From Adineta vaga (taxonomy: Eukaryota > Animalia > Rotifera): a stretch of DNA of 64,000 bases. The notes beneath the pieces are model-generated. The model was given only the letters and a program-made list of their open reading frames with translations. It was not told the origin of the DNA and did not search any database. Shown piece by piece: positions 5,928 to 63,200 of this stretch. The stretch spans positions 496,001-560,000 of the forward strand of contig CP075495.1 in assembly GCA_021613535.1 (NCBI GenBank), written 5' to 3'. Each line of letters begins with the position of its first letter. Positions within the stretch are counted from its first letter, which is position 1. The position numbers and the translations under genes are program-made.

Positions 5928-7931
5928 CTACAATTTATTTTTTACACGTTCGAGATTTTCTTTGGAATCTTGAAGATTAGGATGATTTTCAGATAATGAT
6001 TGTTGTGCAATTTTTACGGCATAATTAAAACATGAGCAAGCTGCTGAGTAATTGTTCAAGCTTTCATGTACTAAACCGATATTATTGTAGGATGATGCCA
6101 AATCTGGATGATTTGAAGGAAGTGAATGTTCTCGAATTGCAAGAGCTTTTTCATACGATGATAGAGCTTTCTTATAATCACTCATGATTCGATATACTGC
6201 GCCGATATTGTTGTAAGATGCAGCTAAATCCGGATGATTTGAAAGAAGTGATTTTTGCCGAATTGCAAGTGCTTTCTCGTAAGATGATAGAGCTTTTTTA
6301 TATTCACCCATGTTTTGATACACGACACCAATGTTACTGTAAGATGAAGCTATATCAGGATGATTTTCATCGAGCGATTGTTTACTAATTTCAAGGTCTT
6401 TTTCATAATAAAAAAGTGCTTTCTTATAATCGCCCATATTTTGATATACTACACCGAGATTATTGTAAGATGAAGCCAATCGAATATCATTAGAAGAAAG
6501 ATTTTTTTCTTCGATGTCAAGTGATTTTTTATAGAATATAATTGCCTCTTCATAGTCTCCTTGATTGTATTTGATGATTCCAAGTTGATGATAGAGTGGC
6601 GCCTTGTCACTATCGTCCGTTGTTTCAATAAGTAATGTTTCATAAATCTCTTTCGCATTGTCGTACTGACCCATTTGAATTAATACCAAACCTAATCTTT
6701 CCCATCCTTCATTGTCTGGAAAGCTTTCTTCTCGAATTCGTTCGGTAAGTGCATTTAACTCTTGGTCATTGTCGCTAGTAAGTGTTAAGCTTACTTCGTA
6801 GAGTTTGTTTGTCTTATCTATTAGTTTGAAATCATGAACACGAAATACACTATGCATAGAAAATAGCACTTCATTTTCAGATCCCACGGCACTAATATCA
6901 TCAATAGAAGCAAATGATGTTGTTGATTGACCAGGATCAATTTTCATCACAAAAAGAATGCCAACTAGATCAGGATTCTTTGTAGCTCGCAGAGCAAATT
7001 CTACTGAAACTTCACGAGTCTTGCTAGTTGACAAGAAGTTGTTGAATGACATTAATCCACCCTTTGTTTCTTTCAGCTGTTCAAAATCTTCTTTTGATAA
7101 GCCTTGACCTCGGTAAACTTTAAAAATTTCAGTAACATTTTGTTCTTTATGTAGTTGTTCAATTTGAAGATCAAGATCCTTTATAAAGAATCCCATCAAT
7201 ATTATTGTATCAGTATTCATCATTCGTAAACCATAGTTGAGCATGGAATATAAGAAACATTCACAGGTATACCACCATATGGGTGTGTTCTGGTGGTAGT
7301 AGTCGTTCAATTTTTCAACATACTTCAATTCGCGCTCATTATTAGCTAAAGGTTTGCGACAAGAATCAAGATAATTTTTAATGTGTGTTTGATCAAAAGT
7401 AATGGTTAGTAAAATTTCTTTCAAGATTTGTGTATACATGAAAGATGAATCCAATTGATTCAATTTCTTGTCAGACTTCATAAAACTCATGGACATAGCA
7501 TTTTGTTCACATTGTTGCGCTACTTGTTTGAGAGCATCACAGATTGGTGTTATCTCTGTGAAAATACCTTTAATTTTAGGCCATTCTTTTGCCCATTCTT
7601 CATGACGATGCTTATTACCACAAAAAATAAAGATCGAATCTACTTGAGACACATTGTGTGCACGAGGTACAATATGTTGCCCAAGTGAACCCGAAATAAT
7701 CATACATGCTTTACGATCTTCGATTGTTTCGAGAAATTGGATACAATGTTTTCCATCGGTATACGTTTTAACATCATTGACAACATGTCGTAATTGAGTA
7801 ATGGTGTTTTGACAATCTTTACTGCCGTTATTTATGTTGCTATCTAACCATATAAGAAGTACATTTTGAACTCTTTGAATATCAAGTCGTTGATGTCTAT
7901 GTACTTCAGTTGTCTTACTGTTACTTGCCAT
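5928..7931 (-). CDS. NAD(+):arginine-type ADP-ribosyltransferase (R-S-E) with N-terminal receiver-like domain and C-terminal TPR repeats
   Basis: Intronless 667-aa ORF; YRGQG, FLSTS and SENEVLF motifs; ~6 TPRs of the ASSYNNIG.VY..MG.Y.KAL..YEK type. Confidence 0.9.
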   Translation of the reverse strand: MASNSKTTEVHRHQRLDIQRVQNVLLIWLDSNINNGSKDCQNTITQLRHVVNDVKTYTDGKHCIQFLETIEDRKACMIISGSLGQHIVPRAHNVSQVDSIFIFCGNKHRHEEWAKEWPKIKGIFTEITPICDALKQVAQQCEQNAMSMSFMKSDKKLNQLDSSFMYTQILKEILLTITFDQTHIKNYLDSCRKPLANNERELKYVEKLNDYYHQNTPIWWYTCECFLYSMLNYGLRMMNTDTIILMGFFIKDLDLQIEQLHKEQNVTEIFKVYRGQGLSKEDFEQLKETKGGLMSFNNFLSTSKTREVSVEFALRATKNPDLVGILFVMKIDPGQSTTSFASIDDISAVGSENEVLFSMHSVFRVHDFKLIDKTNKLYEVSLTLTSDNDQELNALTERIREESFPDNEGWERLGLVLIQMGQYDNAKEIYETLLIETTDDSDKAPLYHQLGIIKYNQGDYEEAIIFYKKSLDIEEKNLSSNDIRLASSYNNLGVVYQNMGDYKKALFYYEKDLEISKQSLDENHPDIASSYSNIGVVYQNMGEYKKALSSYEKALAIRQKSLLSNHPDLAASYNNIGAVYRIMSDYKKALSSYEKALAIREHSLPSNHPDLASSYNNIGLVHESLNNYSAACSCFNYAVKIAQQSLSENHPNLQDSKENLERVKNKL

Positions 7932-10368: not shown

Positions 10369-11439
10369 ATGGCTACTTCGATATCGGCAATCAATCAATC
10401 TCCAACACGTATTCAATGGATGTGGAAGGCTGGTGCAAATCCTTTTTCAAAGACAAGATTAGAAGAGTGGAAGCCATACTCTGATGTGGAAAATATAATC
10501 ATCGAAGAAGCATATCAATCTGGTAAAAAACATGCCGTATTGGATAATTACAGCATCGATTTCAAACACAGATTACAAATACTCAATACGGATGGTAACA
10601 AGCAACGCCCAATCAAAAGAACAATGTGTAATCGAAGCGATCTTTTACGAGAAGAACGATTTACATTTACTCCCATTAATCCTGAACAACCTTTCGGTGG
10701 TCTGTATGGTTGGATTTCACCATTTATTAAAGAAGTAGTGAAGCATCTAAATATCACGCATGAGCAACTACCTTCAAAGGATGAAACAGTCGTTCCTATG
10801 GTTGTAGGAAAAGCTGCATGTGGTATTATTGAAGAAGGCAAGAAAATTGGGAAGCAACGTGAGGCCGAACAGATTGCAAACACATTGCGAGAGCAGAAAA
10901 ATGCAGGAATTCAAAAAGTATGGCAGTGTTGTGCTCATCTATATTCATTGGAAAGTTTTTTATACAAGAAACTAAACGAGACAATGCGATTAATTGGCAG
11001 CAAACAACACGAACAAGAATGGCGAGATAAAATACATACATTAGGACCATTCTGTCTGCTCCTATGGGACAATCCATCCAATTACAAAACAACCGAGCGA
11101 GGAGCAATTTTCTATCGAGGAGGTAATTTATCGCAGGAACAAATTTTGTTATTCAAAAATGACAGTTCAAAAAGTATTTATGAAAAACCAATGCGTTCTT
11201 TTCCGTCATTCACCTCATGCAGTCGAAATCGATCTAAAGCTGAAAAATTTGGAAACGTTTTGTTTATCATGACAGTAAAGCATGCTTTTACTGTGGATCT
11301 TAAACCGTTCTCCAAGTATCCTGATGAAGAAGAAGAATTACTCTCTCCTGGTGTTTGTTTTACTGTTGATCGTTTGGAAAAAATTAACAAAAAACATCTA
11401 ATCTATTTGACACTTATACAGCAATATAGCCGTAAGTAA
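10369..11439 (+). CDS. WWE-domain + ADP-ribosyltransferase (R-S-E type) protein
   Basis: N-terminal QWMW...W.PYSDVEN.IIEEAY...Y.IDF...Q...QRPIKR (WWE); C-terminal YRGG, FTSCS, DEEEELL; possible terminal intron (gtaagt at 11432). Confidence 0.85.
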   Translation: MATSISAINQSPTRIQWMWKAGANPFSKTRLEEWKPYSDVENIIIEEAYQSGKKHAVLDNYSIDFKHRLQILNTDGNKQRPIKRTMCNRSDLLREERFTFTPINPEQPFGGLYGWISPFIKEVVKHLNITHEQLPSKDETVVPMVVGKAACGIIEEGKKIGKQREAEQIANTLREQKNAGIQKVWQCCAHLYSLESFLYKKLNETMRLIGSKQHEQEWRDKIHTLGPFCLLLWDNPSNYKTTERGAIFYRGGNLSQEQILLFKNDSSKSIYEKPMRSFPSFTSCSRNRSKAEKFGNVLFIMTVKHAFTVDLKPFSKYPDEEEELLSPGVCFTVDRLEKINKKHLIYLTLIQQYSRK

Positions 11440-15168: not shown

Positions 15169-18100
15169 TTCCATGTGATGTCCGTTGATGTTCTCATACT
15201 CCTACACTTTGGTTCGATGTTAGTCAAACGGTTGAACAGAAGTCTCATGAGAACTGTCTCTATTCCATGTGATGTCCGTTGATGTTCTCATGCTCCTACA
15301 CTTTGGTTCGATGTTAGTCAAACGGTTGAACAAAAGTCTGATGAGAACTGTCTCTATTCCATGTGATGTCCGTTGATGTTCTCATGCTCCTACACTTTGG
15401 TTCGATGTTAGTCAAACGGTTGAACAAAAGTCTGATGAGAACTGTCTGTATTCCATGTGATGTCCGTCGATGTTCTCATGCTCCTACACTTTGGTTCGAT
15501 GTTAGTCAAACGGTTGAACAGAAGTCTGATGAGAACTGTCTGTATTCCATGTCATGTCCGTTGATGTTCTCATGCTCCTACACTTTGGTTCGATGTTAGT
15601 CAAATAGTTGAAGCGAAGTATTATGAGAACTGTCTCTATTCCATGTGATGTCCGTTGATGTTCTCATACTCCTACACTTTGGTTCGATGTTAGTTGAATA
15701 GTTGAAGAGCAGTCTCTTCAGAACTATCTGTATTCCATGTGATGTCCGTTGATGTTCTCATACTCCTACACTTTGGTTCGATGTTAGTCAAACGGTTGAA
15801 CAGAAGTCTCGTGAGAACTGTCTGTATTCCATGTGATGTCCGTTGATGTTCTCATGCTCCTACACTTTGCTTCGATGTTAGTTGAATAGTTGAAGAGCAG
15901 TCTCTTCAGAACTGTCTGTATTCCATGTGATGTCCGTTGATGTTCTCATGCTCCTACACTTTGGTTCGATGTTAGTCAAACGGTTGAACAGAAGTCTCGT
16001 GAGAACTGTCTCTATTCCATGTGATGTCCGTTGATGTTCTCATGCTCCTACACTTTGCTTCGATGTTAGTTGAATAGTTGAAGAGCAGTCTCTTCAGAAC
16101 TGTCTGTATTCCATGTGATGTCCGTTGATGTTCTCATGCTCCTACACTTTGGTTCGCTGTTAGTCAAACGGTTGAACAGAAGTCTGATGAGAACTGTCTC
16201 TATTCCATGTCATGTCCGTTGATGTTCTCATACTCCTACACTTTGGTTCGATGTTAGTCAAATAGTTGAAGCGAAGTATTATGAGAACTGTCTGTATTCC
16301 ATGTGATGTCCGTTGATGTTCTCATACTCCTACACTTTGGTTCGATGTTAGTTGAATAGTTGAAGAGCAGTCTCTTCAGAACTGTCTGTATTCCATGTGA
16401 TGTCCGTTGATGTTCTCATGCTCCTACACTTTGGTTCGATGTTAGTCAAACGGTTGAACAGAAGTCTCATGAGAACTGTCTGTATTCCATGTGATGTCCG
16501 TTGATGTTCTCATGCTCCTACACTTTGGTTCGATGTTAGTCAAACGGTTGAACAGAAGTCTCGTGAGAACTGTCTCTATTCCATGTGATGTCCGTTGATG
16601 TTCTCATGCTCCTACACTTTGGTTCGATGTTAGTCAAATAGTTGAAGCGAAGTATTATGAGAACTGTCTCTATTCCCTGTGATGTCCGTTGATGTTCTCA
16701 TACTCCTACACTTTGGTTCGATGTTAGTCAAACGGTTGAACAGAAGTCTCATGAGAACTGTCTCTATTCCATGTGATGTCCGTTGATGTTCTCATACTCC
16801 TACACTTTGGTTCGATGTTAGTCAAACGGTTGAACAGAAGTCTCGTGAGAACTGTCTGTATTCCATGTGATGTCCGTCGATATTCTCATGCTCCTACACT
16901 TTGCTTCGATGTTAGTCAAACGGTTGAACAGAAGTCTGATGAGAACTGTCTGTATTCCATGTGATGTCCGTTGATGTTCTCATACTCCTACACTTTGGTT
17001 CAATGTTAGTTGAATAGTTGAAGAGCAGTCTCTTCAGAGCTGTCTCTATTCCATGTGATGTCCGTTGATGTTCTCATGCTCCTACACTTTGGTTCGATGT
17101 TAGTCAAACGGTTGAACAGAAGTCTGATGAGAACTGTCTGTATTCCATGTGATGTCCGTTGATGTTCTCATGCTCCTACACTTTGGTTCAATGTTAGTTG
17201 AATAGTTGAAGAGCAGTCTCTTCAGAGCTGTCTCTATTCCATGTGATGTCCGTTGATGTTCTCATGCTCCTACACTTTGGTTCGATGTTAGTCAAACGGT
17301 TGAACAGAAGTCTGATGAGAACTGTCTGTATTCCATGTGATGTCCCTCGATATTCTCATACTCCTACACTTTGGTTCGATGTTAGTCAAACGGTTGAACA
17401 GAAGTCTCGTGAGAACTGTCTGTATTCCATGTGATGTCCGTTGATGTTCTCATGCTCCTACACTTTGGTTCGATGTTAGTCAAACGGTTGAACAGAAGTC
17501 TGATGAGAACTGTCTCTATTCCATGTGATGTCCGTTGATGTTCTCATACTCCTACACTTTGGTTCGATGTTAGTCAAACGGTTGAACAGAAGTCTCGTGG
17601 AGAACTGTCTCTATTCCATGTGATGTCCGTTGATGTTCTCATGCTCCTACACTTTGGTTCGATGTTAGTCAAACGGTTGAACAGAAGTCTGATGAGAACT
17701 GTCTGTATTCCATGTGATGTCCGTTGATGTTCTCATACTCCTACACTTTGGTTCGATGTTAGTCAAACGGTTGAACAGAAATCTCGTGAGAACTGTCTGT
17801 ATTCCATGTGATGTCCGTTGATGTTCTCATGCTCCTACACTTTGGTTCGATGTTAGTCAAACGGTTGAACAGAAGTCTGATGCGAACTGTCTGTATTCCA
17901 TGTGATGTCCGTTGATGTTCTCATGCTCCCACACTTTGGTTCGATGTTAGTCAAACGGTTGAACAGAAGTCTGATGAGAACTGTCTGTATTCCATGTGAT
18001 GTCCGTTGATGTTCTCATGCTCCTACACTTTGGTTCGATGTTAGTCAAACGGTTGAACAGAAGTCTCGTCAGAACTGTCTCTATTCCATGTGATGTCCGT

Positions 18101-21100
18101 TCATGTTCTCATGCTCCTACACTTTGGTTCGATGTTAGTCAAACGGTTGAACAGAAGTCTGATGAGAACTGTCTGTATTCCATGTGATGTCCGTTGATGT
18201 TCTCATGTTCCTACACTTTGGTTCGATGTTAGTCAAACGGTTGAACAGAAGTCTCGTGAGAACTGTCTGTATTCCATGTGATGTCCGTTGATGTTCTCAT
18301 ACTCCTACACTTTGGTTCGATGTTAGTTGAATAGTTGAAGAGCAGTCTCTTCAGAACTGTCTGTATTCCATGTGATGTCCGTTGATGTTCTCATGCTCCT
18401 ACACTTTGGTTCGATATTGGTCAAACGGTTGAACAGAAGTCTCTTCAGAGCTGTCTGTATTCCATGTGATGTCCGTTGATGTTCTCATGCTCCTACACTT
18501 TGGTTCGATGTTAGTCAAACGGTTGAACAGAAGTCTCGTGAGAACTGTCTGTATTCCATGTGATGTCCGTTGATGTTCTCATACTCCTACACTTTGGTTC
18601 GATGTTAGTCAAACGGTTGAACAGAAGTCTCGTGAGAACTGTCTGTATTCCATGTGATGTCCGTCGATATTCTCATGCTCCTACACTTTGCTTCGATGTT
18701 AGTCAAACGGTTGAACAGAAGTCTGATGAGAACTGTCTCTATTCCATGTGATGTCCGTTGATGTTCTCATGCTCCTACACTTTGGTTCGATGTTAGTCAA
18801 ACGGTTGAACAGAAGTCTGATGAGAACTGTCTGTATTCCATGTGATGTCCGTTGATGTTCTCATGCTCCTACACTTTGGTTCAATGTTAGTTGAATAGTT
18901 GAAGAGCAGTCTCTTCAGAACTGTCTGTATTCCATGTGATGTCCGTTGATGTTCTCATGCTCCTACACTTTGGTTCGATATTGGTCAAACGGTTGAACAG
19001 AAGTCTCTTCAGAGCTGTCTGTATTCCATGTGATGTCCGTTGATGTTCTCATACTCCTACACTTTGGTTCGATGTTAGTCAAACGGTTGAACGGAAGTCT
19101 TTTCAGAGCTGTCTGTATTCCATGTGATGTCCGTTGATGTTCTCATGCCCCTACACTTTGGTTCGATGTTAGTCAAACGGTTGAACAGAAGTCTGATGAG
19201 AACTGTCTGTATTCCATGTGATGTCCGTTGATGTTCTCATGCTCCTACACTTTGGTTCAATGTTAGTTGAATAGTTGAAGAGCAGTCTCTTCAGAGCTGT
19301 CTCTATTCCATGTGATGTCCGTTGATGTTCTCATGCTCCTACACTTTGGTTCGATGTTAGTCAAACGGTTGAACAGAAGTCTGATGAGAACTGTCTGTAT
19401 TCCATGTGATGTCCCTCGATATTCTCATACTCCTACACTTTGGTTCGATGTTAGTCAAACGGTTGAACAGAAGTCTCGTGAGAACTGTCTGTATTCCATG
19501 TGATGTCCGTTGATGTTCTCATGCCCCTACACTTTGGTTCGATGTTAGTCAAACGGTTGAACAGAAGTCTGATGAGAACTGTCTGTATTCCATGTGATGT
19601 CCGTTGATGTTCTCATGCTCCTACACTTTGGTTCAATGTTAGTTGAATAGTTGAAGAGCAGTCTCTTCAGAGCTGTCTCTATTCCATGTGATGTCCGTTG
19701 ATGTTCTCATACTCCTACACTTTGGTTCGATGTTAGTCAAACGGTTGAACAGAAGTCTGATGAGAACTGTCTGTATTCCATGTGATGTCCGTTGATGTTC
19801 TCATGCTCCTACACTTTGCTTCGATGTTAGTCAAACGGTTGAAGAGAAGTCTCATGAGAACTGTCTCTATTCCATGTGATGTCCGTTGATGTTCTCATAC
19901 TCCTACACTTTGGTTCGATGTTAGTCAAACGGTTGAACAGAAGTCTGATGAGAACTGTCTGTATTCCATGTGATGTCCGTTGATGTTCTCATGCTCCTAC
20001 ACTTTCGTTCGATGTTAGTCAAACGGTTGAAGAGAAGTCTCATGAGAACTGTCTCTATTCCATGTGATGTCCGTTGATGTTCTCATACTCCTATACTTTG
20101 GTTCGATATTGGTCAAACGGTTGAACAGAAGTCTCTTCAGAGCTGTCTCTATTCCATGTGATGTCCGTTGATGTTCTCATGCTCCTACACTTTGCTTCGA
20201 TGTTAGTCAAATAGTTGAAGCGAAGTATTATGAGAACTGTCTCTATTCCATGTGATGTCCGTTGATGTTCTCATACTCCTACACTTTGCTTCGATGTTAG
20301 TCAAATAGTTGAAGCGAAGTATTATGAGAACTGTCTCTATTCCATGTGATGTCCGTTGATGTTCTCATACTCCTACACTTTGGTTCGATGTTAGTCAAAC
20401 GGTTGAACAGAAGTCTGATGAGAACTGTCTCTATTCCATGTGATGTCCGTTGATGTTCTCATACTCGTACACTTTGGTTTGATGTTAGTCAAACGGTTGA
20501 ACAGAAGTCTCGTGAGAACTGTCTGTATTCCATGTGATGTCCGTTGATGTTCTCATACTCCTACACTTTGGTTCGATATTGGTCAAACGGTTGAACAGAA
20601 GTCTCTTCAGAGCTGTCTCTATTCCATGTGATGTCCGTTGATGTTCTCATACTCCTACACTTTGGTTCGATGTTAGTCAAACGGTTGAACAGAAGTCTGA
20701 TGAGAACTGTCTGTATTCCATGTGATGTCCGTTGATGTTCTCATACTCCTACACTTTGGTTCGATGTTAGTCAAACGGTTGAACAGAAGTCTGATGAGAA
20801 CTGTCTGTATTCCATGTGATGTCCGTTGATGTTCTCATACTCCTACACTTTGGTTCGATGTTAGTCAAACGGTTGAACAGAAGTCTGATGAGAACTGTCT
20901 GTATTCCATGTGATGTCCGTTGATGTTCTCATGCTCCTACACTTTGGTTCGATGTTAGTCAAACGGTTGAACAGAAGTCTGATGAGAACTGTCTGTATTC
21001 CATGTGATGTCCGTTGATGTTCTCATGCTCCTACACTTTGGTTCGATGTTAGTCAAACGGTTGAACAGAAGTCTCGTGAGAACTGTCTGTATTCCATGTG

Positions 21101-22058
21101 ATGTCCGTTGATGTTCTCATGCTCCTACACTTTGGTTCGATGTTAGTCAAACGGTTGAACAGAAGTCTGATGAGAACTGTCTGTATTCCATGTGATGTCC
21201 GTCGATGTTCTCATGCTCCTACACTTTGCTTCGATGTTAGTTGAATAGTTGAAGAGCAGTATTATGAGAACTGTCTCTTTTCCATGTGATGTCCGTTGAT
21301 GTTCTCATACTCGTACACTTTGGTTTGATGTTAGTCAAACGGTTGAACAGAAGTCTCGTGAGAACTGTCTCTATTTCCTTGCATGTCTTTGGTTCTCATT
21401 TTACTCCTACACTTTGTTCGAGTCAAACGACGGTTGAACAGAGTCTCGATGCAGGGAACTGTCTGTATTCCATGTGATGTCGTTGATATTCTCATGCTCC
21501 TACACTTTGGTTCGATGTTAGTCAAACGGTTGAGACAGAAGTCTGATGAGAAGCTGTCTGTATTCATGTGATGTCCGTTGATGTTCTCATTACTCCTGAC
21601 ACTTTGGTTCGATGTTAAGTTTGAAACGGTTGAACAGAAGTCTCTTCAGAGCTGTCTCTATTCCATGTGATGTCCGTTGTTGATGTTCTCATCATGCTCC
21701 TAACCCAACTTTGGTTCGATGTTAGTCAAAACGGTTGAACAGAAGTCTGATGAGAATCTGTCTGTATTCCATGTGATGTCCACGTGATACAGTTCTCTCA
21801 TGTCTCCTACAACTTTTGGTTCAATGTAGTATCTCCTGACCATAGTTGAAAGAGCAGTCTCTTACAGAAGCTGTCTGTATATCCATGTGTCATGCTCCGT
21901 TGATGTTCTCATGCTCCTACACTTTGATGTTCGATGTTAGTCGAAACGGTTGAACATGAAGTCTCCCTCATGAGAACTGTCTGTATTCCATGTGATGTCC
22001 GTTGATGTTCTCATAATAGCTCCTACACTTTGTTTCGATGTTGGTCAAACGGTTGAAC
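15169..22058. repeat. Tandem satellite array, 94-bp unit, ~73 copies
   Basis: Unit ttccatgtgatgtccgttgatgttctcat(a/g)ctcctacactttggttcgatgttagtcaaacggttgaacagaagtct(g/c)(a/g)tgagaactgtct(g/c)ta repeated head-to-tail; indel-rich from ~21360. Confidence 0.97.
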
Positions 22059-48451: not shown

Positions 48452-50169
48452 TTATGCATAAACATGTCCTTCAATATATTTCAATAAAGCTAATTCACCA
48501 GCTAATGTTTCTTGACCAGTTGGAATAATTTGATCTTCTGGTAACAGAAATCCATATTTACCTAAGAACAAATCATCAAAGAAAATGTTCATGGGCGATT
48601 AAAAATAGTGGATATTACCTGTATCTCGAAGTTCTACACCATAACTAAATGTTATATTAACTTTACCATAAGTCCAATCAGCACTACTACCCGATGCAAC
48701 ATAAATAATTGAAGCAATATTACCATGAATATATTTTGTACCTGAAAGAAAAAGAATTTTCTCACAAAAATCTTTACATATCCAAACTGACCATAAACAG
48801 CAGCAAGTGCTTGAACAGCCACAGCAGATCCATCATCTTGTAATTTAAAATGAACTGGTTTTGCTGTTGTATAACCTATAATCAAGTATATATATATATA
48901 TATGATAAATTCGAGATCATATCAGACAACAAGAATTTACCCCATGGCGACATCCAAAATTGTGAATAAGAATGAAAGTTAATATAATGAATAATTGTAT
49001 CAGCATGTTCCTGAATAAATTTAGCAACTTGTGCTGTTTCAACTTCTGAAAATGCTTTACTACCACAATAAGTATCATCACATGGATCACTCGAAGCACC
49101 ACCTATATATTGAAGGATTTTATAAGTAAGAATAAGGAGAGGATGAAAATTAATATACTTTCACACCAATGATAATCCCAATTTCGATTTGGATCAGCTC
49201 CGAAACAATTAGGTTTTGATGTTTTACTTCGAGTTTTTCGCCATAATCGATCTAGAAAGAAAAAGAAAAGATTTTTAATGCAATATTCTTTCTTATATTC
49301 TCTCATTAACCTTTCGTCCATGTATATACATAACCATCGACATTGAATACAGGTAAAATATAATAATCAAATTGATCAATTAAATGAGTAATCGTTGGAT
49401 CTTTATTATAATTTGATAAAAATGCATAAGCAATATAAATATTAGTTGCTGGACTAATCCATTCTCGTGAATGAATACCTAAAAATCAAAATAAACTTTT
49501 CGAATAATTTTCAAATTCATTTCATATACCTCCATCCCACCAAACAGCTTTTTTCTGATTGATTGCAGTTCCATCTTGTTTAGTAGCGAATTTATTTGAT
49601 GATATTTTCAAACCTTTCAATGGACGATTTTCATATGATTGTCCAACGATAAATGATGTTGCTAATGATGGATATGTTGCCACCATTGTATCAATCCATG
49701 CATGAATTTCATCAAGTGTATGATATTTATCATATTCAAAATCATTCACCTGCATTTTTGATGATTGTGATCGATGAATTAATTTTTGTCCTTGAATTAT
49801 CGCACCAATATCTTTCATGATCACATCGTATTGCATTTTCATTACATCTGATGATAAATATGCATTAAAACTTTGAAGAGATTTAGGTGCAATACTAACA
49901 TCAATCTAAATCAATAAAATGAATCAATCAATGAAATAAAACAATCGAAAATTTACTGGAATATTAGTTCGAATATCTTCAGACCAAAAGTTAATGTTTT
50001 GTTCATTTGTTTTACGACGAAAATCAACTAATTGTTTCACTTGTTCATCATTTGTAATATTCAAACGCCATAATTGATATTGAGAATAGGATTTATAAGC
50101 ATTAACATTGATATTAAGAGTTGTTAAAAGAACGAAACTAACAACAATTGCCCAAAGCAACATTGTCAT
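48452..50169 (-). CDS. Zinc carboxypeptidase A/B (M14A) with propeptide, multi-exon
   Basis: Signal peptide, YQLWRL prodomain, [44 protein letters not shown]. Confidence 0.93.
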
Positions 50170-51239
50170 ATCTTTTAAAACACGAACTATAACCACCTAT
50201 ATAAATATAAATATAATAAAAGTTATCAGAATCTAAATAGATATACGCTTTTCTTTCACTTCATAGATAAATAAGACTAAATGATGATGAAGGACAAAAA
50301 AAAGCTCTTGGTCATCATGACAAATTAATCATTAGAAAAAAAACCATACGTAAATATGATCTGCAAAAAATCAAAGCATCGAATAAATTTACTTTTTTTC
50401 TATTTTATTTGATGAATATTTCATTGAAGTAAACACAGCATTCATTTTTTTGTTGCGATAAATTTCTGTGTAGTTTCGTTAAGAAGAAAGAAAAGGTTTG
50501 GCAACAGTGAGATGGAATTTACAAGAATAATCTTTGTATGAGAATCATCGTTCTAAATGATGTTTTAATTGAGGGTGGGTGTGGGTGTAATAGAGAAATA
50601 ATTAAACCCACACCCAAAGCCTAGCATTAGCAATAGATGAGTGTAGACGTTTACTTTACTGAATCAATTCATCAGATAATTTCACTATATAAAACCTGCT
50701 TAAAGATCCGATTCAATGACAAATGAATCGTTCATGTTTACAATTTCGAAGATGTGAGTGACGATATGTGACGTCGCTTCGATAACATAAAGTATTAAAG
50801 AAAATACGTGATGTATTCGAACAATATTAATGACTTATGTAGAGAAAAAACCAAGCAGGAGAAAAAGAATACCCAACCAATAGGACGATGCTGCGTATAT
50901 GTGAGGTAAGGAATTATATATAATCACTCAGTAAGAATATTTTCTCCTTTTTCTTATGAATTTTTTCCAAAAGCCAGACAAGTCAATATTGACCAGGATG
51001 TCAATGCAAGAAAAACTGCGTCAAAAGAATAGAAGAAAGATTATATTTCATATATAAATTACCAATCCTATTGACATATTATCAGTTTCCATGTAACACA
51101 GAACACAACAAAATATCTCAGACAGTTCCATCGTCAGTTCACATTGAAAATTAATATATCACAGTGAGAAGTTTTGTGAATAATCTATATTTTATTTCAA
51201 GACACAACAACAAAGTACTTGTGGAAAATACTGAACCAA

Positions 51240-51542
51240 ATGGATCAAGAAAAACCAAAAGGTAAATTTCTTTTTTTCGTCATCATATTTAAGAAGGGAA
51301 CGATAGATTTCAAAACTTTGACACTCCAAGAATTGCTTTTACCTTATGCGTGTTTTTATTTTTGTATAGAACAAGGCAAAGATGGTTCATATCTTCGTAG
51401 TCTATTAGCCGGTGGAGCTATTGGCGCAACAACAGGTGCTACTGTTGGCTTAATTGGTGGTCCTATTGGCTCTTTCGCTGGAGGCTTTTTCGGTGCATTC
51501 ACCGGAATTATAGTTGCTGGTGTGAAAGGAATGAAGAATTGA
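51240..51542 (+). CDS. Small glycine-zipper membrane-associated protein, 2 exons
   Basis: MDQEKPK|EQGKDGSYLRSLLAGGAIGATTGATVGLIGGPIGSFAGGFFGAFTGIIVAGVKGMKN with a GxxxGxxxG ladder; GT-AG intron 51262-51369. Confidence 0.8.
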   Translation: MDQEKPKGKFLFFVIIFKKGTIDFKTLTLQELLLPYACFYFCIEQGKDGSYLRSLLAGGAIGATTGATVGLIGGPIGSFAGGFFGAFTGIIVAGVKGMKN

Positions 51543-51737
51543 AAATAATCTTCTATTTTTTTATGTCTATTTTGAACTTCGAGTTCTTGTTTTACTTAAT
51601 CAAGAATGAAAGAAGATGTTAAGAAGTGTGTAACCGACATATATACTCTTATTCTCTAATCATACCAACACCATCAAGTTTGTTAATATAATTCGAAATC
51701 AATAAATTTTCTGAAATAAAAAAACAAAAAAAATTGA

Positions 51738-54700
51738 TTAGTCTATTTTGCTTCGTTTTGTCGTCAATCTTAATAATGAACAAATTGTACCAATAGGAAA
51801 ATTTAACCATTCTTTTTTTCCAATACAATTTCTATTTGATAATTCATCATCAGGAAGACGTTCTTTACAACTTGCACTTTTATTAATCACATCAATTAAA
51901 GCAATTGCCATACCTTGTGAAATAATAATTATAATTAATTGTATAAAACTTAAATGAACTGGTTGATGATAATCAAAAATAATTGCAAATGGTGTAATAT
52001 GAAACCAATGAGCATGTTCAAGATCATATAATGTAAAAATGAAATTAAATATAATTCCAACAATAATATAAATTAATATTGATAAATAATAAGCTCTTGT
52101 TCCTTGATTTTCTCTTACTGTTGCTAAATATTCCACATTTTTCGATTTATATAATAATAAATATCGTCGTATTGTAGTCCATGTATTTAATAGAAAAACA
52201 ATAATTGAAACACATGATAAACATATTAAATATAATTTTTGTATAATTTTCATATATTCAAATGATATTGTTAAAGAAAAAAGAGTAGTTAAATCCGTAA
52301 TAACAATCATCCAACTAAACCAATCAATTCCTTGTATTAAAATTGTTGTTAATAAACGTAAAATACTAATAAAATAACTTATTCTTTTATTTGCTCCATA
52401 AGCATGATTAATTGTAACACCAATATCAATCATTCTTGAATCATGTACAACTAAAATATTTCCTGTTATCATTGTTGTATATGCAGCACGTGTATATAAT
52501 AATATTCTATCATATGGTTGTTCAATTTTAACTAAAGTTTTAAAAATCCAAACAGATTTTTGTATTGGTTCAATTAAAAACATAATTGGAGCAATAATTA
52601 ACATTCGAATAAATATTAATCTTATACCAAATAAAAATCCTAAAAGATAATTTTTCCATGTAATATAATTATTAATTTGACTTTTTTTAATATAAGAATA
52701 TTCTTTATGATATTTATAAGTTTTAACAATATTAAATCGAGTTATTTTCCAATCAAATATATAACGTATTATATCAGGAATATTATCAAATAAACCACGA
52801 AAATGACTATAAGATATTTGATTATAACAATCAAGAACAAGTTTATTAACTGATGATGTAAATTGTTTAATAATTGAACAATTTTTTGGTTTAATATATG
52901 ATAAATTATTAAATTGATGATTTATACCAAATATTTTTAAATCTTCAATTAATAAATTTTGTATTTTAAATTCATAATTTAATATTTGAATTTGATTCCA
53001 TGAATAATTTTTATATTGATATAATTCTGATGATTGATCTAATGTTAATTGACGAGATTTCCAAAACTTTTCTAATTGATTTCTAGTTGGAAATATTCCT
53101 AATGCAAAATATTCACTTAATTTAGCACGATCATTTGCATTCATTTCATTAAATGGATATTTATATTTACGCATAGATAATAAATAATTTTCAACTAAAA
53201 TTCCTAAATGTTTTATTTGTTTATCATTATTAAAACCCATTCTATTCCATTGATGTTTACCTAAATCTAATAATGTATTTAATAAACGATATAAATATTT
53301 ACTACTACGATAAATTGTTCGTCCTGATTGAACTTGTTTTAATGAATAATTTTTAATATATTTTAAAAAATTTCCATATTGTTCATTAATTGATTGATAT
53401 AATTGATTATTTGTTAAAAGATTTGTACGTAAAGTTTTATCTTGAACATAAGAAACATCAACATAATTATTATATTGTTCAACATTAACATAATATAATG
53501 AACCTTCAGCAACACAAGCATCATTAGCAAAATAAATTGCTTTAGAAAATTTATGTCGCATTGAAACAGTAAGTGTATCAATATATAACATTTCATTTGG
53601 TGGTATTTGAAGTATTGGATGAAAAAATGAATTTTCATAACGATCTTTTCTTTCTCGAATTTCACGTTCAAGATGACGAGCTTGTCGAAGATATGAAATA
53701 AATAAAATATTACTTTGTTCCATTAAAATTGGTCTCATTTCTTCATGAATTTTATTCCATAAAATTTCAAATTTTGTTGAATCATATCGAGTTATTTTCA
53801 TTATTGAAATAAGATTTGTTATTTCATTTAATGCACAAAGAATTAATTCATTTGTTGGACTTATTTGTGTCAATAATTTTTTCGTATATTTCCAATAAGT
53901 TTTATCAGCATGAGAAAAAAATTCATTTAAAAATGGATCACAATCCATTGTTGTTCTTCTATCAATATAATCATGCCATTCTTTTCCTGTCATTGATTTT
54001 CGTAATTTAATTAATGACATTTGATTTTGTTTATAATCATTTACTTCAGTAAAGAAATACGAAGGATAATCACAACGTATAGTTATAAATATACCTAAAC
54101 CAGTTCCATTAATATTAAATTTTGGTTCAATAGTATTCATATGTCTTGGATATAAATTTGTATCAAATACAATACCAGATGGTAAAGACCAATGTTGAGA
54201 AAAGAATTCATTAAATATAACACATGCATCAATATCAGTATCACTACCATCAGTTGAACCTATACGAATATCATAATCAGATTCAGGATCTTTACTACCA
54301 GAATCATTTTGTATAATTAATTTATAAGGAAATAAATCCATTAATTGTTCTAATAAATTATTAATATACATTTCACGATACCAACAAAGTTTTAACATAA
54401 ATTTTGTTGTATCATTTGGTGTTAATTGTTTGACAATATCTATTATATAACGAGAGATATCATTACAAATAATATCAGAATGTGAATCATCAGCAAAGAG
54501 TTCAACAAGATTATCCCAATCTCTGATTTGATCAATAATTTGACTACATGAATATTTACTTGTAAATAGAAGATTATTATGATCATCCAAAAGAATAATT
54601 GAATCATTTTCAATCATTGGAATACGAAGTTTAATTAAGGTTTTTTGAAATAAATTCGATTCTAAACTTCGTATTTTATCACTTTTTCTCGATGTATATT

Positions 54701-55135
54701 CAGTGTTTATCATACGATCGATATTTAATGTAATAACATTATCTTTTATTTTATCTTGTGTTAACCAATCAACAAGAACAAGACGATTTTTAGATTTTGA
54801 TAATTGTTGATGAATATTCTGAGATGAAAGTAAACAACAAACACTACCTGTCATTTCAATTGACATACTTCCAATTGCCTTGAATGAACAATGAATAAAA
54901 ATAATACAAAGAAGTTTTGTCAATTCTAATTACTTACCGTTGTTAGTTTATTTTCTGTATATAGACAAACAATATCTCCTGATGAAAGATTGTAATTTTC
55001 TAAAATAAACATGGCGATGTGTTGTGCATGATAAATTAGTTCATTAGAAGTAAGAGATTGTTCATTAAATTCCACTGTTATTTGTTGAGGATGATTATTA
55101 ATATAATCCATTGCTTCACCTTTAATTACGACCAT
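51738..55135 (-). CDS. ~1112-aa fusion: degenerate NRPS adenylation-domain N-terminus + putative nucleotidyltransferase domain + multi-pass TM domain
   Basis: Exon 1 55135-54938, 59-nt GT-AG intron, exon 2 54878-51738. HPQQITVEFNEQSLTSNEL...GDIVCLYTENKLTT|AIGSMSIEMTGSVCCLLS; SGSKDPESDYDIRI...FDTNLY; ~6 hydrophobic helices in the last ~300 aa. Confidence 0.8.
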
Positions 55136-55688
55136 GTGTAAAACGATTGATAGGATATTTTATTAAATAATAATGTAATTATATATCGATCGTAAAATAA
55201 TATCACATGTGCACGTAAATTCAAATATAAGAATCAATATAATGTTATCAAAAAGGGCGTTACACGTCGTCATACGTATATTTTTTCTTCCTCTCTGTTT
55301 TTTTATCACGCATCGTTGACGTTTTATCGTCTTTTCTATACATCAATGACGTCAACTTTGAAAGTTCAACTTTATAATGAAAGCGATATAGAACGAGCGA
55401 GACGGATCGTCGTTCTTAAAAATTTATTTTCTTTATAATAACAAGTTCGTGTTATTTTCTATACTTCGTTGCTGATGAATAATTTTCATTGGTTAAGCAG
55501 AATCATCTGAATATGTTAATATAAAATAAGTCCATACAATCACCATATGTTTTTTAATACAATGTTGTGATTTTCGTTGTGCGAGGAAAATAAAAAGAAA
55601 CGATTGTAATACAATTTTATTGATATCAAAAATAACAGAGTAGAAAGAGAAAAATTAACAAGTTTTTTCATTCATTTTATAAAAGGTT

Positions 55689-57293
55689 ATGGATTTGATT
55701 ACATTTCTAATTCTTATCATTTCTCTTCTATTTCTAAAAGGTTAGTAAACTATAATTATCTCATTGCTTTGATTATCAATATCTTATTTCGAGATCAAAC
55801 CATCGCATCATCTAATTATTTATGTCATGAAAATAATATTGATGTTGAATTTTCATTGTCAACATCAGATCATTCTGCATCGAATTCAACATCAACTTGT
55901 TCTTTACAACAATGTAATGTAACTTCAACTGATTATCAAACTTGTTCTTTATCACCAACACCTTGTTTTAATTATCGTACAATAAACAATGTTAGTTATT
56001 GTGCTCCTGCTATTCAATGTTCAATTTTGAAATTATGTGATAATACGACATATAGTTGTGTATCAAATAGTTCAATATGTGTTGTTAATTCATGTTGTTC
56101 AACATCAACTGTATGTTTACCTGAGATGGTTACGAACTTCTGTCTACGAGGTAAGAATTAATATTTATTTAGTTTAGGATGGATGGTTGTGATTATCAGC
56201 TGAGAATATATATTGCTTACGTTCATCCTTAATTTTTAACGTTTCCAAAAAGGATAGGTTACTAATCAAAATCAGCAATGATTCAAATTATTTTATTTTG
56301 AATTGTATTTAGAAAAGAATCTTTGTTTTTTTAGGATGGACACTAACTGGAAATATGAATGTTGAACGATATGCTCATACAGCATCCGTATTATCGAATG
56401 GAAACGTATTAGTTACTGGTGGATATAATGGTAGTGTCTTTCTCACAAGTGCTGAATTGTATGATCCAACGACGGGTATTTGGACAATAACAGGAGATAT
56501 GAATGTTGAACGATATGCTCATACAGCATCCGTATTATCGAATGGAAAAGTGTTGGTTACTGGTGGTATTTATCTCAGAAGTGCTGAAATATATGATCCG
56601 TTGACAGGTATTTGGACAATAACAGGAGATATGAATGTTGAACGATATGCTCATACAGCATCCGTATTATCGAATGGAAAAGTATTAGTTACTGGTGGAT
56701 ATAATGGTAGTGTCTTTCTCACAAGTGCTGAAATATATGATTCGTCGACAGGTATTTGGACAATAACAGGAGATATGAATGTTGAACGATATGCTCATAC
56801 AGCATCCGTATTATCGAATGGAAACGTATTAGTTACTGGTGGATATAATGGCAGTGTCTTTCTCACAAGTGCTGAAATATATGATTCGTCGACAGGTATT
56901 TGGACAATAACAGGAGATATGAATGTTGAACGATATGCTCATACAGCATCCGTATTATCGAATGGAAAAGTGTTGGTTACTGGTGGTATTTATCTCAGAA
57001 GTGCTGAAATATATGATTCGTCGACAGGTATTTGGACAATAACAGGAGATATGAATGTTGAACGATATGCTCATACAGCATCCGTATTATCGAATGGAAA
57101 AGTGTTGGTTACTGGTGGTATTTATCTCAGAAGTGCTGAAATATATGATTCGTCGACGGGTATTTGGACAATAACAGGAGATATGAATGTTGAACGATAT
57201 GCTCATACAGCATCCGTATTATCGAATGGAAAAGTATTAGTTACTGGTGGACAATATGGTAGTGCTATTCTCACAAGTGTTGAATTATATTGA
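55689..57293 (+). CDS. Secreted Kelch-repeat protein with Cys-rich N-terminal domain, 3 exons
   Basis: Signal exon 55689-55740, Cys-rich exon ~55793-56150, exon ~56336-57293 with 7 Kelch repeats (MNVERYAHTASVLSNG.VLVTGG...SAE.YD..TG.W). Confidence 0.9.
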
Positions 57294-60275: not shown

Positions 60276-63200
60276 ATGGATATCGAAGTGATAAGAATCG
60301 AACAGTCTACAAATGCTGAACACCATCAATCGACTGGAAGACATATAATTTCATATGCAAAGGACAAAGTATTAAAAGCACAGTTTGTATATTCATTAGT
60401 AGTTCTTCTTTTTAATTAACTTCTATTATTCATAGAAAGAAAATTGGTTCTCGTTTGCTTTTTATATTATTTTCAATATTGACATGTATTTCAATGATTA
60501 TTGGAATTCTAGTTGTTTATTATACTGTACCAAAACAAAGTGAGTTATTGACAAAAAATTTCTAAATAAAACTTTAATTTCTTTATTAAAAGATCATATT
60601 TGTCAAATGACATATAAACAAACAATAAAAAGTTTAATTATTCATAATTCACAACCAAGATCAATTGATATTGGTGATCTTAATTATGATAATCAAATGG
60701 ATATTGTTGTTGCTAATACTGGTACAAATACAATTGGAATTTTTATTTCAATTAATAATGAAACGTTTCATAATCAACAAATTTATTCAACTGGATTAAG
60801 ATCTCAACCATATTCACTTGTTCTTAATTATTTTAATAATGATCATTATTTAGATATTGCTGTAGCAAATTATGGAACGAATAATATTGGTCTTTTCTTT
60901 GGTCAAGGTAATGGAACATTTCAAGATCAAATATTAATTTCAACAAATTCATTTCGTCCTTGGTTTATTGAATCTAATGATTTGAATAAAGATAATTATT
61001 CTGATTTAGTTGTTATTTTCTATGGAACAGATAACATGGGTATTCTTTTTGGTAAAAATGATGGATTTTTTGATAAATTAATCATCTATTCAACTGGTTA
61101 TGATTCTCTTCCACATTCATTAGCAATCAAAGATTTAAATAATGATCAATATTTAGATACTGTTGTAACTAATTATGAAACAAATAATGTTGAAATCTTT
61201 TTTAATTATGGAAATGGAACATTTCAAAATCCAGTTGTTTATTCAACAAATTCTAATTCTCATCCATCATCTGTTGTTATTAGTGATTTAAATAATGATG
61301 GCGAATTATATATGATTATTGATAATTTTAATGATAATTATATCGTTATTTTTTATGGGATTGGTAATGGAAGTTTTATTCGACGAAATTTTTATTCAAC
61401 TGGAGAAAATTCATCACCACAATATCTTTGTATTGGAGATTTTAATAATGATCATCGAATGGATATTCTTGTTGCAAATCTTGCTGGGAATAATGTTGGT
61501 ATTCTTCTTGGAAAAGATAATGGAACTTTTGAATCGATGATTCCTTATTCGAGTAGTATTGGATCACAACCATGGTTTGCAACTATTGGTCATTTTAATA
61601 ATGATACTTATCTAGATATTGTCTCTTCAAATAGCGATTTTGGAACAATAACTATTTGGTTTGGATTGGGTGATGGTTCTTTTACTAATATGACAATATA
61701 TTCTACTGATGTTTATGGTAGACCATTTGGGATCACTGTTGGCGATGCTAATAACGATAATCATTCCGATCTTATCTTTGCAAACTACAATATCTGATAT
61801 GCCAGGTGTTTTCTTAGGCCATAGTGACGGAAGTTTTACATTGATGACATCAATTCCGATTGAGATTTCTGACGATGGTTTTATGATTGTTCTTGCTGAT
61901 TTTAATGGAGATAATTATTTGGATTCTGCCATTTCATACATCAATTCAGCAATCATAGGTGTTTCTTTTGGTAATGGAGATGGTACATTTAAGAGCAGAG
62001 CTATTTATTCAACTAAAGATATTGGTCAACCATATTATTTAGCTGCAATTGATTTTAATAATGATAATTATATCGATATTGCTGCGACAATTTTGAGTTC
62101 GAGTGAAGTTGCTATTTATTTCAATGATGGTCAGGGTAATTTTGAACTTGCAAGATTATATTCAACGAAATACGGTTCAAATCTCTATGCTCTGGCGATC
62201 GCTGATCTTGATCATGATAATCAATTAGAAATTATTGCGACTTATTGGGGTACGGGTTATGTTGGAATATTAACTCAATATAATGCTGCAAAATTTACTA
62301 ATCAATCAACATATTCAACAGGATCTGCTCCACGTCCATATTCATTAGCGATAGGTGATTTTAATCTTGATAATCAAACAGATGTTGTTATTGCTAAGTC
62401 TGCAACTGATAATTTAAGTATTCGTTTTGGTTCAAATAATGATACATTTACAAATGAAATAATCTATGAAATAGGAAGTGATTCTTATCCACAATATGTG
62501 ATTACAAATGATGTTAATAAAGATAATTATTTAGATCTTATTGTTGTTAATTCAAAAAGTAATACAATGAGTTTAATGTATGGATATGGAAATGGTTCAT
62601 TTGCCAATCAACTAATTTATTCAACTGGAGATAATTCACATCCTTATTCAATTGTTATGAATGATGTAAATAATGATCAAAGAAATGATTTAATTATTGC
62701 TAATGAAGGAAAAGATAATATTGGAATATTTCTTGGATTTGACTATACAACTTTTATGAATGTAAATACTTATTTGATTGAAAATCATACAACACCATAT
62801 AGTGTTGTTGTTAATAATTTTAATAATGATAATGAACTTGATATTGCTGTTGTTTTTTATGATAGTTCGAATTTAGCGATTCTTCTTGGACAAGGTAATG
62901 GAAGTTTTATTATTTCAATGTCCTATTCTATAGGAGATGATTTATTTATATCCATTTATGTTGGTTGCAAATGATTTAAACAACGATAAACAATTAGATC
63001 TTATTGTTGTTATCTATGGTCTAAGTAGTGTTGGCATTTTTCTTGGATTTGGCAATGGAACGTTTGCTCCTATAATAACATCTTCAACTGGAAAATATTC
63101 CGGTCCTAAATATGCTGCTATTGATGATGTTAACAGTGATAATGTATCAGATATTATCTCAGCAAATTATGGTGCTAATACAATAAGTATTCTGATCGGA

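Follow-up and report, generated by a model that had tools for sequence, protein, structure and literature searches.

A chimeric gene of the bdelloid rotifer Adineta vaga that looks like a toxin-type nucleotidyltransferase taken over by an animal

Introduction

Nucleotidyltransferases (NTases) of the Pol-beta superfamily include minimal proteins such as the MNT/MntA antitoxin, Sulfolobus 2rff and the kanamycin/ANT(4') enzymes, as well as GlnE, GlnD and DrrA, which carry a helical domain behind the NTase core. MntA AMPylates protein, and DrrA (SidM) of Legionella is a translocated effector that AMPylates the host GTPase Rab1; protein-modifying enzymes are common among translocated effectors. Here we describe a gene of the bdelloid rotifer Adineta vaga, on the minus strand at 51738-55135 of a 64,000-nucleotide (nt) stretch of contig CP075495.1 (assembly GCA_021613535.1, forward-strand positions 496,001 to 560,000; this whole stretch is called the window, and coordinates are those of the window), which joins the beginning of a nonribosomal peptide synthetase (NRPS) adenylation domain (A domain), a domain with a predicted Pol-beta-type NTase fold and a C-terminal membrane domain. 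The central domain shares with the minimal NTases the helix-strand-(GS)-strand(DxD)-helix-strand(D) core in its S-D-x-D form, and these proteins are the top structural neighbours of that core; it differs from them in having no detectable sequence kinship, a spacer of 5 and not 9-13 residues between GS and DxD, an extra helical lobe of ~300 amino acids (aa) with invariant motifs of its own, and a membrane anchor. With GlnE, GlnD and DrrA it has in common the S-D-x-D motif and, apparently, the order of NTase core and helical domain; it lacks the G-x11-D-x-D spacing and any Pfam GlnE, GlnD_UR_UTase or NTP_transf_2 match, and the structural likeness to GlnE and GlnD is weak (TM-score 0.28-0.33; Z 5.4). 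DrrA itself is absent from the structural match lists.

Bacterial members of the same domain family match the toxins associated with extracellular contractile injection systems (eCIS-associated toxins, EATs; Geller et al. 2021, PMC8213781; Danov et al. 2024, PMC11297309) in combining an eCIS_core N-terminus with a C-terminal toxin domain. The A. vaga protein has only the toxin domain in common with EATs; it carries no eCIS_core and is an endogenous eukaryotic membrane protein, and Pfam's toxin families do not include the family domain. The terms nucleotidyltransferase, AMPylat- and adenylyl- are absent from the main text of PMC8213781 and PMC11297309, and we found no description of this domain family in the literature. 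With the cGAS/DncV-like NTases (CD-NTases) and cGAS-like enzymes of cyclic-oligonucleotide-based anti-phage signalling systems (CBASS) that act with transmembrane effectors, the A. vaga protein shares the NTase superfamily fold and, in concept, the pairing of an NTase with a membrane partner; however, CdnE and the cGAS-like receptor rank no higher than other NTases among its structural neighbours, and neither a PADLOC or Pfam match nor a defence operon goes with it. As for the N-terminus, bdelloids possess a large NRPS family and horizontally acquired NRPS and polyketide synthase genes (Nowell et al. 2024, PMC11258130). The start of the A. vaga protein belongs to the A-domain family of these NRPS genes and has the same intron position, and the gene differs from them in retaining only the first ~125 aa of the A domain.

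Results

The central ~470 aa of the protein represent an uncharacterised, mostly bacterial family, in agreement with the foreign affinity that a first-pass annotation of this DNA, made from the letters alone, had given to the domain. Exon 1 and exon 2 were searched separately in all sequence searches. A word-based protein search returned nine relatives, from Rotaria sordida, Adineta steineri, A. ricciae, A. vaga or metagenome contigs, and an exhaustive profile search extended the family to 329 representatives at E<=1e-3 (~330 clusters at 50% identity), the distant ones matching only profile positions ~158-600. An alignment of 55 sequences at 20-25% identity holds 14 invariant residues (R19, G45, S46, S51, D52, D54, D90, N92, Y94, N349, E350, K378, Y379 and R382; domain numbering plus 149 gives exon-2 numbering), falling into the patterns G-S, S-D-x-D, D-x-N-x-Y, N-E and K-Y-x-x-R. 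Invariance in the 55 members thus covers the predicted metal-binding motif GSKDPESDYD (54270-54299; exon-2 G194, S195, S200, D201 and D203) as well as the third carboxylate D239 with N241 and Y243 in FDTNLY (54150-54167), and the conservation that the first-pass annotation had expected of SDYD and FDTN holds. The motifs it quoted are all present within a few bases of the places it gave (SGSKDPESDYDIRI at 54261-54302 against 54265-54303, SGIVFDTNLY at 54150-54179, FANDACVAEG at 53502-53531, SINEQYGNFLK at 53361-53393 and SSKYLYRL at 53283-53306). It had also remarked that GS and DxD lie closer together than in cGAS; the spacer (GS-KDPES-DYD) has 5 residues, outside the canonical range, and is free of gaps in every family member shown. 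The shortness of the spacer characterises the entire family in the sequences compared and is not a defect of the A. vaga copy.

Searches for characterised sequence relatives gave little. Pfam, NCBIfam and PADLOC returned no usable match to exon 2, the lone row being a spurious xanthine-permease match in the membrane part. Scanning the 55 domain sequences singly against Pfam at E<=1 gave scattered noise only, with no GlnE, GlnD_UR_UTase, NTP_transf_2, SMODS, Mab-21 or RelA_SpoT match; PDB sequence profile searches with two family alignments (A2 and A3) gave nothing or coiled-coil noise, and an ESM-Atlas feature search with the soluble domain gave only a faint NTP_transf_2 lead.

The predicted structure was more telling. 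The AlphaFold2 (AF2) model of the 471-aa domain (ma3e615a01505; predicted local distance difference test (pLDDT) 87.4, predicted template-modelling score 0.87) is laid out as a helix (5-33), a strand (38-42), G45-S46, a strand (53-59) with D52-x-D54 at its start, a helix (65-81) and a strand (91-95) with D90 just before it, followed by ~340 residues of helices. When the whole model was searched with Foldseek and VIA, helical-bundle noise dominated, while GlnE (3k7d), CutA, TUT7 and 2rff still appeared; GlnE 3k7d reached Z 5.4, its 217 aligned residues coming from both lobes, and all ten rows of an ESM-Atlas fold search were GlnD-type NTase plus GlnD_UR_UTase, with TM-scores of only 0.28-0.33. 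The NTase signal was clear only after the first 170 aa had been folded alone (AF2 model m7bbe6b0bef73, pLDDT 83.8), a part that corresponds to the Pol-beta-type core at 53922-54431 with its helix, strand, GS, strand with SDYD, helix, strand with FDTN and helices. The top Foldseek rows for this model were MntA, TUT7, GLD-2, CutA, HI0073, CdnE, Tailor, TdT and Pol lambda (E 0.16-0.9). A VIA search of 48,161 chains, independent of Foldseek, gave Pol-beta-superfamily NTases in ~30 of the best 50 rows, with 2rff (Z 5.9) and CutA (5.8) followed by URT1, SAS2, the CCA-adding (tRNA-processing) enzyme, Cid1, OAS2, GLD-2 and TdT, and with Pol mu, MNT, SpoT, PAP, Tas1, LinB, TglT, MenT1 and ANT(4') among further rows. 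Rescoring of the Foldseek matches by VIA left NTases in 48 of 50 rows, at Z 5.0-6.1 (CutA 6.1, Cid1 6.0) and a root-mean-square deviation of ~3 A, and these matches align 83-100 residues within model residues 1-102, spanning GS, DxD and D90.

The AF2 models contain the superfamily's alpha-beta-alpha-beta-alpha-beta core with a mixed sheet, at Z of only 5-6; G45-S46 (exon-2 G194-S195; 54294-54299) provides the hG[GS] element, and in alignment and model D52 and D54 would provide [DE]h[DE]h on strand 2 and D90 the carboxylate on strand 3. Because the rescored rows are almost exclusively NTases and the invariant G-S, D-x-D and D lie on the expected elements, the models indicate that the central domain very probably has the Pol-beta-superfamily NTase fold. 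This is the fold that the first-pass annotation had proposed, and the structure prediction that it named as a check came out in favour of the fold, though at the Z values just given. The core is followed by an all-helical domain (53019-53921) that includes FANDACVAEG, SINEQ and SSKYLYR with the invariant N498, E499, K527, Y528 and R531, and that together with the core shows the weak two-domain likeness to GlnD and GlnE.

The genomic context of bacterial relatives points to a toxin role. Related loci, sought with a cyanobacterial subset of the alignment (A6), lie in the cyanobacteria Planktothrix, Oscillatoria, Laspinema, Coleofasciculus, Phormidium and Mastigocoleus, in Aggregatilineales (Chloroflexota), in Myxococcota, in Alphaproteobacteria and other Pseudomonadota, and in Gemmatimonadota. 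An N-terminal eCIS_core (DUF4157) is present in 7 of 56 full-length relatives, Ntox3 in one and a weak RelA_SpoT match in one. In Laspinema sp. D2d (L010) the gene order is a Pvc16_N protein, an AAA ATPase, a fusion of eCIS_core with the family domain, and a second eCIS_core protein, the family member sitting at the 3' end of a contractile-injection-system operon; in Planktothrix the neighbour of the family gene encodes an eCIS_core plus Ntox11 protein. The Aggregatilineales gene lies among housekeeping genes, so the delivery routes vary between family members. Given the eCIS_core domains and the position at the 3' end of an injection-system operon, we consider it highly probable that the bacterial members are eCIS cargo toxins and that the A. 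vaga domain is of toxin-family ancestry. PADLOC, including its CD-NTase models, gave no match for the A. vaga protein or for six relatives, and no CBASS-type operon was seen in the bacterial contexts examined (eCIS operon end, toxin neighbours, housekeeping genes). The link to cGAS, CD-NTases and CBASS drawn in the first-pass annotation thus found no support: PADLOC and Pfam are empty, and the bacterial relatives look like eCIS cargo toxins, not parts of defence operons.

The domain is encoded in a gene of two exons. The reading frames in the window, 54926-55135(-) of 69 aa and 51738-54923(-) of 1061 aa, are joined by a 59-nt, phase-0 GT..AG intron at 54879-54937(-) (GTAAGT...CAAG; minus-strand junction ...ACA ACG / GTAAGT ... 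TTCAAG / GCA ATT GGA...). Exon 1 extends over 54938-55135, giving 66 aa from the ATG at 55135, the first start codon past an in-frame stop, and exon 2 over 51741-54878, giving 1046 aa in the same frame, with the stop codon at 51738-51740; the spliced product has 1112 aa. Public sequencing runs were aligned to 51400-55500. A 679-nt contig of run X8 (record 26) spans 54485-54877 and 54937-55222 and omits precisely the 59-nt intron (CT..AC on the plus strand, which is GT..AG on the minus strand), and no intron-skipping joint was found in the DNA-like run X6, whose depth exceeds 100 in nearly all bins of 51400-55500. The type of X8 is unrecorded, and we read it as cDNA from its patchy, gene-limited coverage and its spliced contig. 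The contig also defines a 5' untranslated region of at least 87 nt (55136-55222), and a further X8 contig (51480-52295) passes the stop codon unspliced. We can therefore say with great confidence that the locus is one expressed two-exon gene of A. vaga, joined by the intron and of the length that the first-pass annotation had predicted, and the splice that it proposed is supported. In the 100.8-Mb A. vaga assembly the gene is single-copy, and a search of it for a paralogue or ohnologue elsewhere found none. In a contig of run X2, exon 1 has 3 nt inserted in frame after 55121 (TTA, plus strand); this is probably allelic or strain variation within the rapidly evolving N-terminal part.

This N-terminal part, ~125 aa long, corresponds to the start of an A domain and covers the A1-A2 region only. 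Exon 1 (A1 region, LTSNEL) matches positions 422-474 of the AusA NRPS model at E 2.7e-4, with weak acyl-CoA ligase and DltA matches, and the first 60 aa of exon 2 (54699-54878) form a degenerate A2 region that stops short of core motif A3, as traced by tblastn of residues 63-159 of the A. steineri orthologue P0004 and by own-genome matches to residues 58-125. The likeness is real but weak in the A. vaga copy, whereas P0004, which is ~50% identical to A. vaga exon 1 plus the start of exon 2 (51% over exon 1 alone), passes Pfam AMP-binding with 32.5 bits (cut-off 29.9) over protein residues 12-107 and profile positions 10-100 of 384. Core motifs A3-A10 (TSGxTGxPK, YGPTE, GELxIGG, PxxxxGK) were not found, exon 2 has no AMP-binding match at E<=1, and past residue ~125 there is no A-domain likeness, the rest of exon 2 aligning with non-NRPS proteins; thiolation, condensation and thioesterase domains are absent from the A. 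vaga gene. Since motifs A3-A10 are absent, the stub is predicted to be non-catalytic and unable to adenylate, as the first-pass annotation had held, and its A-domain nature is borne out both by the Pfam match of the orthologue, ending at profile position 100 of 384, and by the at least 173 matches that these ~125 aa have in the A. vaga genome, many of them split at residues 61-63. These stub-like NRPS matches often stand in tandem arrays near chromosome ends (C3:19.87-19.93 Mb, C1:17.96-18.02 Mb and C5:10.18-10.26 Mb; examples L030-L035 and L039-L041), some with a phase-0 intron after residue ~62-66 and others unbroken (e.g. C1:13718588-13725822).

The intron of the stub identifies its source. 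The same position (...ATG/GTAAGT...TTAG/nTnATTGG) is occupied in A. steineri (L036; a 52-nt intron), in R. sordida (L038), whose annotation starts only downstream of exon 1, and in three paralogous A. vaga NRPS A domains (L039-L041). This shared position argues that the stub is a copy, taken with its intron, of one of the rotifer's own resident NRPS genes, and its possession of the NRPS family's own intron argues that the fusion arose within the rotifer lineage. A metagenome gene of another rotifer-like eukaryote, P0007 (L002 8001-12797), a single 4797-nt reading frame on a eukaryote-like contig of 191 kb (191,744 bp, ENA), has an NRPS condensation domain (E 3e-28) ahead of the same NTase-membrane body, so the gene is headed by different NRPS pieces in different lineages; this suggests that an ancestral insertion into a condensation-adenylation module was followed by differing losses. 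The earlier notion of an NRPS first exon and promoter is thus too simple. A condensation-domain remnant upstream of exon 1 was sought within the window and an A-domain stub was sought in P0007; neither was found. Between stub and NTase core lies a linker or N-terminal extension (54432-54698; IP.I.DSIILLD.H..IIFTS.Y.C) whose conservation extends through the rotifer clade, P0007 and P0009 included (alignment A1; BLASTP of P0007 against P0004, E 4e-21).

At the other end of the protein, past a variable linker between soluble and membrane parts (52653-53018; alignment A1), a polytopic membrane domain (51879-52652) is followed by a C-terminal tail with the stop codon (51738-51878; LPDDELS.R..I..KEWLNFP.GTICS), which has invariant columns in alignment A1. 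A hydropathy scan shows five hydrophobic segments of 28-31 residues (exon-2 743-773, 833-860, 876-903, 926-954 and 973-1000), so that the multi-helix C-terminus (~300 aa) of the first-pass annotation stands and its count of ~6 helices becomes five. The polar loops QPYDR, VHDSR.ID, NTWTT.RR and RENQ.TR are conserved. Such hydrophobic segments are absent from the bacterial relatives in the hydropathy scan, and neither a profile search nor ESM-Atlas found a relative of the membrane domain outside the eukaryote-type clade; Pfam gave no match. The first transmembrane segment, loop and second segment are homologous to P0018 (BLASTP E 2e-11) and P0016 (E 1e-5), two proteins that also end in hydrophobic segments. 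P0018 is a EukProt entry, and P0016 lies next to a P450 and to an ABCC-type full transporter for which every named relative is eukaryotic; both proteins are likely eukaryotic. In a quick maximum-likelihood tree, A. vaga, R. sordida, A. steineri, P0007 and the outer pair P0009/P0010 make up one rotifer-type clade, with P0016 and P0018 as its sister (Shimodaira-Hasegawa-like approximate likelihood ratio test 99) and all bacterial rows on the other side. Since P0016 and P0018 share the first two membrane segments and their loop, the NTase-membrane unit appears older than the NRPS stub, and the first-pass view that NTase and membrane domain were fused in bdelloids did not hold up. The breadth of the family in bacteria and its patchiness in eukaryotes favour a transfer out of bacteria into eukaryotes. 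We rejected reading a bacterial donor off the tree, because a long branch separates the eukaryote-type clade from all bacterial rows and the clade is of deviant amino-acid composition.

The A. vaga protein is nearer to that of R. sordida (75% identity, lower dN throughout) than to that of the congeneric A. steineri (~67-69%), and the tree pairs A. vaga with R. sordida (support 87). This affinity could reflect differential loss of old paralogues, bdelloid-to-bdelloid transfer, or a mislabelled or contaminated assembly.

Selective constraint was estimated by Nei-Gojobori ratios of nonsynonymous to synonymous substitution (dN/dS) against A. steineri and R. sordida, for exon 1 also between these two species. 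All parts have values below 1: 0.28-0.50 in exon 1, 0.13-0.31 in the stub part of exon 2, 0.33-0.45 in the NTase core, 0.40-0.53 in the helical lobe, 0.65-0.79, the highest, in the second linker, and 0.28-0.32 in the membrane domain.

Other genes of the window include an ADP-ribosyltransferase plus TPR protein at 5928-7931(-), a WWE plus ADP-ribosyltransferase protein at 10369-11439(+), an adjoining Kelch-repeat reading frame of near-identical ~47-aa units (MNVERYAHTASVLSNG.VLVTGG...) at 56355-57293(+), and two overlapping frames with FG-GAP/VCBS-type repeats at 60607-62974(+), near the gene; Kelch and FG-GAP/VCBS repeat families are both common in bacteria. The 6 kb at 16001-22000 have a GC content of 0.42, against 0.25-0.35 in neighbouring stretches, and their AT skew is strongly negative (about -0.23 to -0.25). 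The region lies ~0.5 Mb from the start of chromosome 2 and looks like a hotspot of gene families and foreign genes.

Discussion

Taken as a whole, the gene looks like a chimera of a dead NRPS stub, an NTase-fold domain with relatives among cargo toxins, and a membrane anchor, that is, a toxin-type enzyme taken over by an animal. An expressed, chimeric, membrane-anchored NTase is the best overall explanation, and we regard it as somewhat better than an even bet; that the NTase domain is catalytically active we regard as reasonably probable. In such an enzyme the catalytic domain would face the cytosol, because the protein lacks a signal peptide and begins with a part of cytosolic type, and would be held at the membrane by the C-terminal domain. 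D201, D203 and D239 (exon-2 numbering) would bind two Mg2+ ions, a nucleoside monophosphate would be moved from a nucleoside triphosphate to a hydroxyl group of the target, and the helical lobe (N498, E499, K527, Y528, R531) would supply contacts to nucleotide and substrate. The NRPS stub would do no chemistry and would serve as translation start and N-terminal appendage. The target would most likely be a protein, subject to AMPylation or UMPylation as with GlnE, GlnD, DrrA and MntA, because the two-lobe layout and S-D-x-D recall GlnD and GlnE, because MntA modifies protein, and because such enzymes, with DrrA as example, are frequent among translocated effectors; by analogy, protein modification is our leading suggestion for the chemistry, in line with the DrrA-type AMPylase that the first-pass annotation had named as one alternative, and a tentative suggestion that we hold at well under even odds.

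Several points weigh against this reading. Every structural Z value is below 8, in a range where a match may mean mere common arrangement, and the two-lobe likeness to GlnD and GlnE is weak (TM-score 0.28-0.33; Z 5.4). The 5-residue spacer between GS and DxD departs from the canonical 9-13, and no sequence method ties the domain to any characterised NTase. The membrane topology comes from hydropathy alone, X8, the source of the spliced contig, has no record as RNA, and with low dS (0.3-0.9) in a very AT-rich gene the dN/dS values are rough. The eCIS_core is found in a minority of the bacterial members, some of which lie among housekeeping genes (Aggregatilineales), and for all family members the substrate and even the activity are putative.

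The domain could act on RNA or tRNA instead, tailing or blocking RNA 3' ends at a membrane like the MenT and AbiEii toxins or the terminal uridylyl and adenylyl transferases. The top-scoring neighbours of the core are indeed RNA-tailing enzymes (CutA Z 6.1, Cid1 6.0, TUT7 5.5 and URT1 5.3, with the CCA-adding enzyme at 5.2), the toxins MenT1 and TglT are also among the neighbours, and the invariant basic residues R19, K142, R144, K378 and R382 could bind nucleic acid. However, these Z values tie with those of NTases that modify proteins or small molecules (MntA, ANT(4'), SAS, OAS), the match being to the shared minimal core only; moreover, the helical lobe is unlike the PAP-associated domain of terminal uridylyltransferases, and RNA-tailing enzymes are seldom membrane-anchored, which together make an RNA target unlikely.

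In the eukaryote-type clade the NTase invariably comes with the polytopic membrane domain, whose polar loops are conserved, and this would also suit a self-contained signalling module, in which the NTase makes a second messenger or alarmone and the membrane domain is the effector, as in a one-protein version of CBASS or Tas1; CdnE, OAS2, the cGAS-like receptor, small alarmone synthetases, SpoT and Tas1 are all among the structural neighbours (Z 4.4-5.3). The CD-NTases among them are not ranked above other NTases, though, the protein and six relatives have no PADLOC match, the domain contains no Pfam SMODS, Mab-21 or RelA_SpoT, and the bacterial relatives have no membrane partners and resemble injected cargo rather than members of defence operons. 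We judge such a module improbable, and the CBASS analogy that the first-pass annotation had drawn did not hold, PADLOC and Pfam being empty and defence operons absent from the contexts examined.

The protein could instead be a pseudoenzyme, or a relic left to decay after gene transfer. It would then be only a membrane protein whose domain binds nucleotides or acts as a scaffold, comparable to the NTase-fold, non-catalytic membrane proteins MiD49/51, and this would account for the non-canonical spacer, for the absence of a known activity in any family member, for an N-terminal part that is surely a dead fragment, and for a locus 0.5 Mb from a chromosome end in a region of foreign-looking and expanded families. 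Yet every rotifer copy retains 14 of 14 family-invariant residues, the three carboxylates included, the short spacer is family-wide and found in the bacterial toxins too, dN/dS is below 1 in all parts, and the 1046-codon frame is intact and expressed; a pseudoenzyme or relic is therefore quite improbable.

The deposited model of the gene, P0005 (I4U23_005816, 1129 aa; 48455-54713(-)), begins within exon 2, treats 52533-53474 as an intron and continues into the downstream M14 carboxypeptidase gene (propeptide and peptidase domains, ~48455-50196), fusing the pieces 54713-53475 and 52532-51783 to the carboxypeptidase. Although it is the annotation on deposit, this model is almost certainly wrong as the true gene, since the 3186-nt frame runs without interruption, the supposed intron is conserved coding sequence with invariant family motifs in A. 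steineri, A. ricciae, R. sordida and metagenome orthologues, and contigs of X1, X2 and X8 are unspliced across 52532, 53475, 51783 and 51535, one contig lying inside the supposed intron; these data argue that the gene and the M14 carboxypeptidase are two separate genes. Between the stop codon and the carboxypeptidase gene, contigs of X1 and X2 cover 51400-51566 at 19-35x, against ~2-6x over the NTase gene; this segment overlaps a small Gly-rich reading frame (51219-51542(+)) and may be a separate, more strongly expressed small transcript.

Returning to the membrane-anchored NTase, the gene has a bearing beyond A. vaga at several levels. It corrects a mis-fused GenBank gene model and offers a clean, datable example of recombination between foreign and resident genes in bdelloids. 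The family to which its central domain belongs is sizeable (~330 clusters), has an intact NTase signature and no Pfam model, and connects cargo toxins of contractile injection systems in cyanobacteria and other environmental bacteria with conserved eukaryotic membrane proteins; it is a candidate for a new enzymatic class of eCIS effector, directly assayable. The boldest possibility, to which we give only a small chance, is that an animal, as well as two or more further eukaryote lineages, domesticated a toxin domain of bacterial injection systems as an active membrane-tethered NTase, with the polytopic partner as effector or gate, in a single-polypeptide device for nucleotide transfer or signalling. 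If that were true, it would be a kind of device undescribed in eukaryotes, standing in bdelloids behind sequence from a pathogen-responsive NRPS family.

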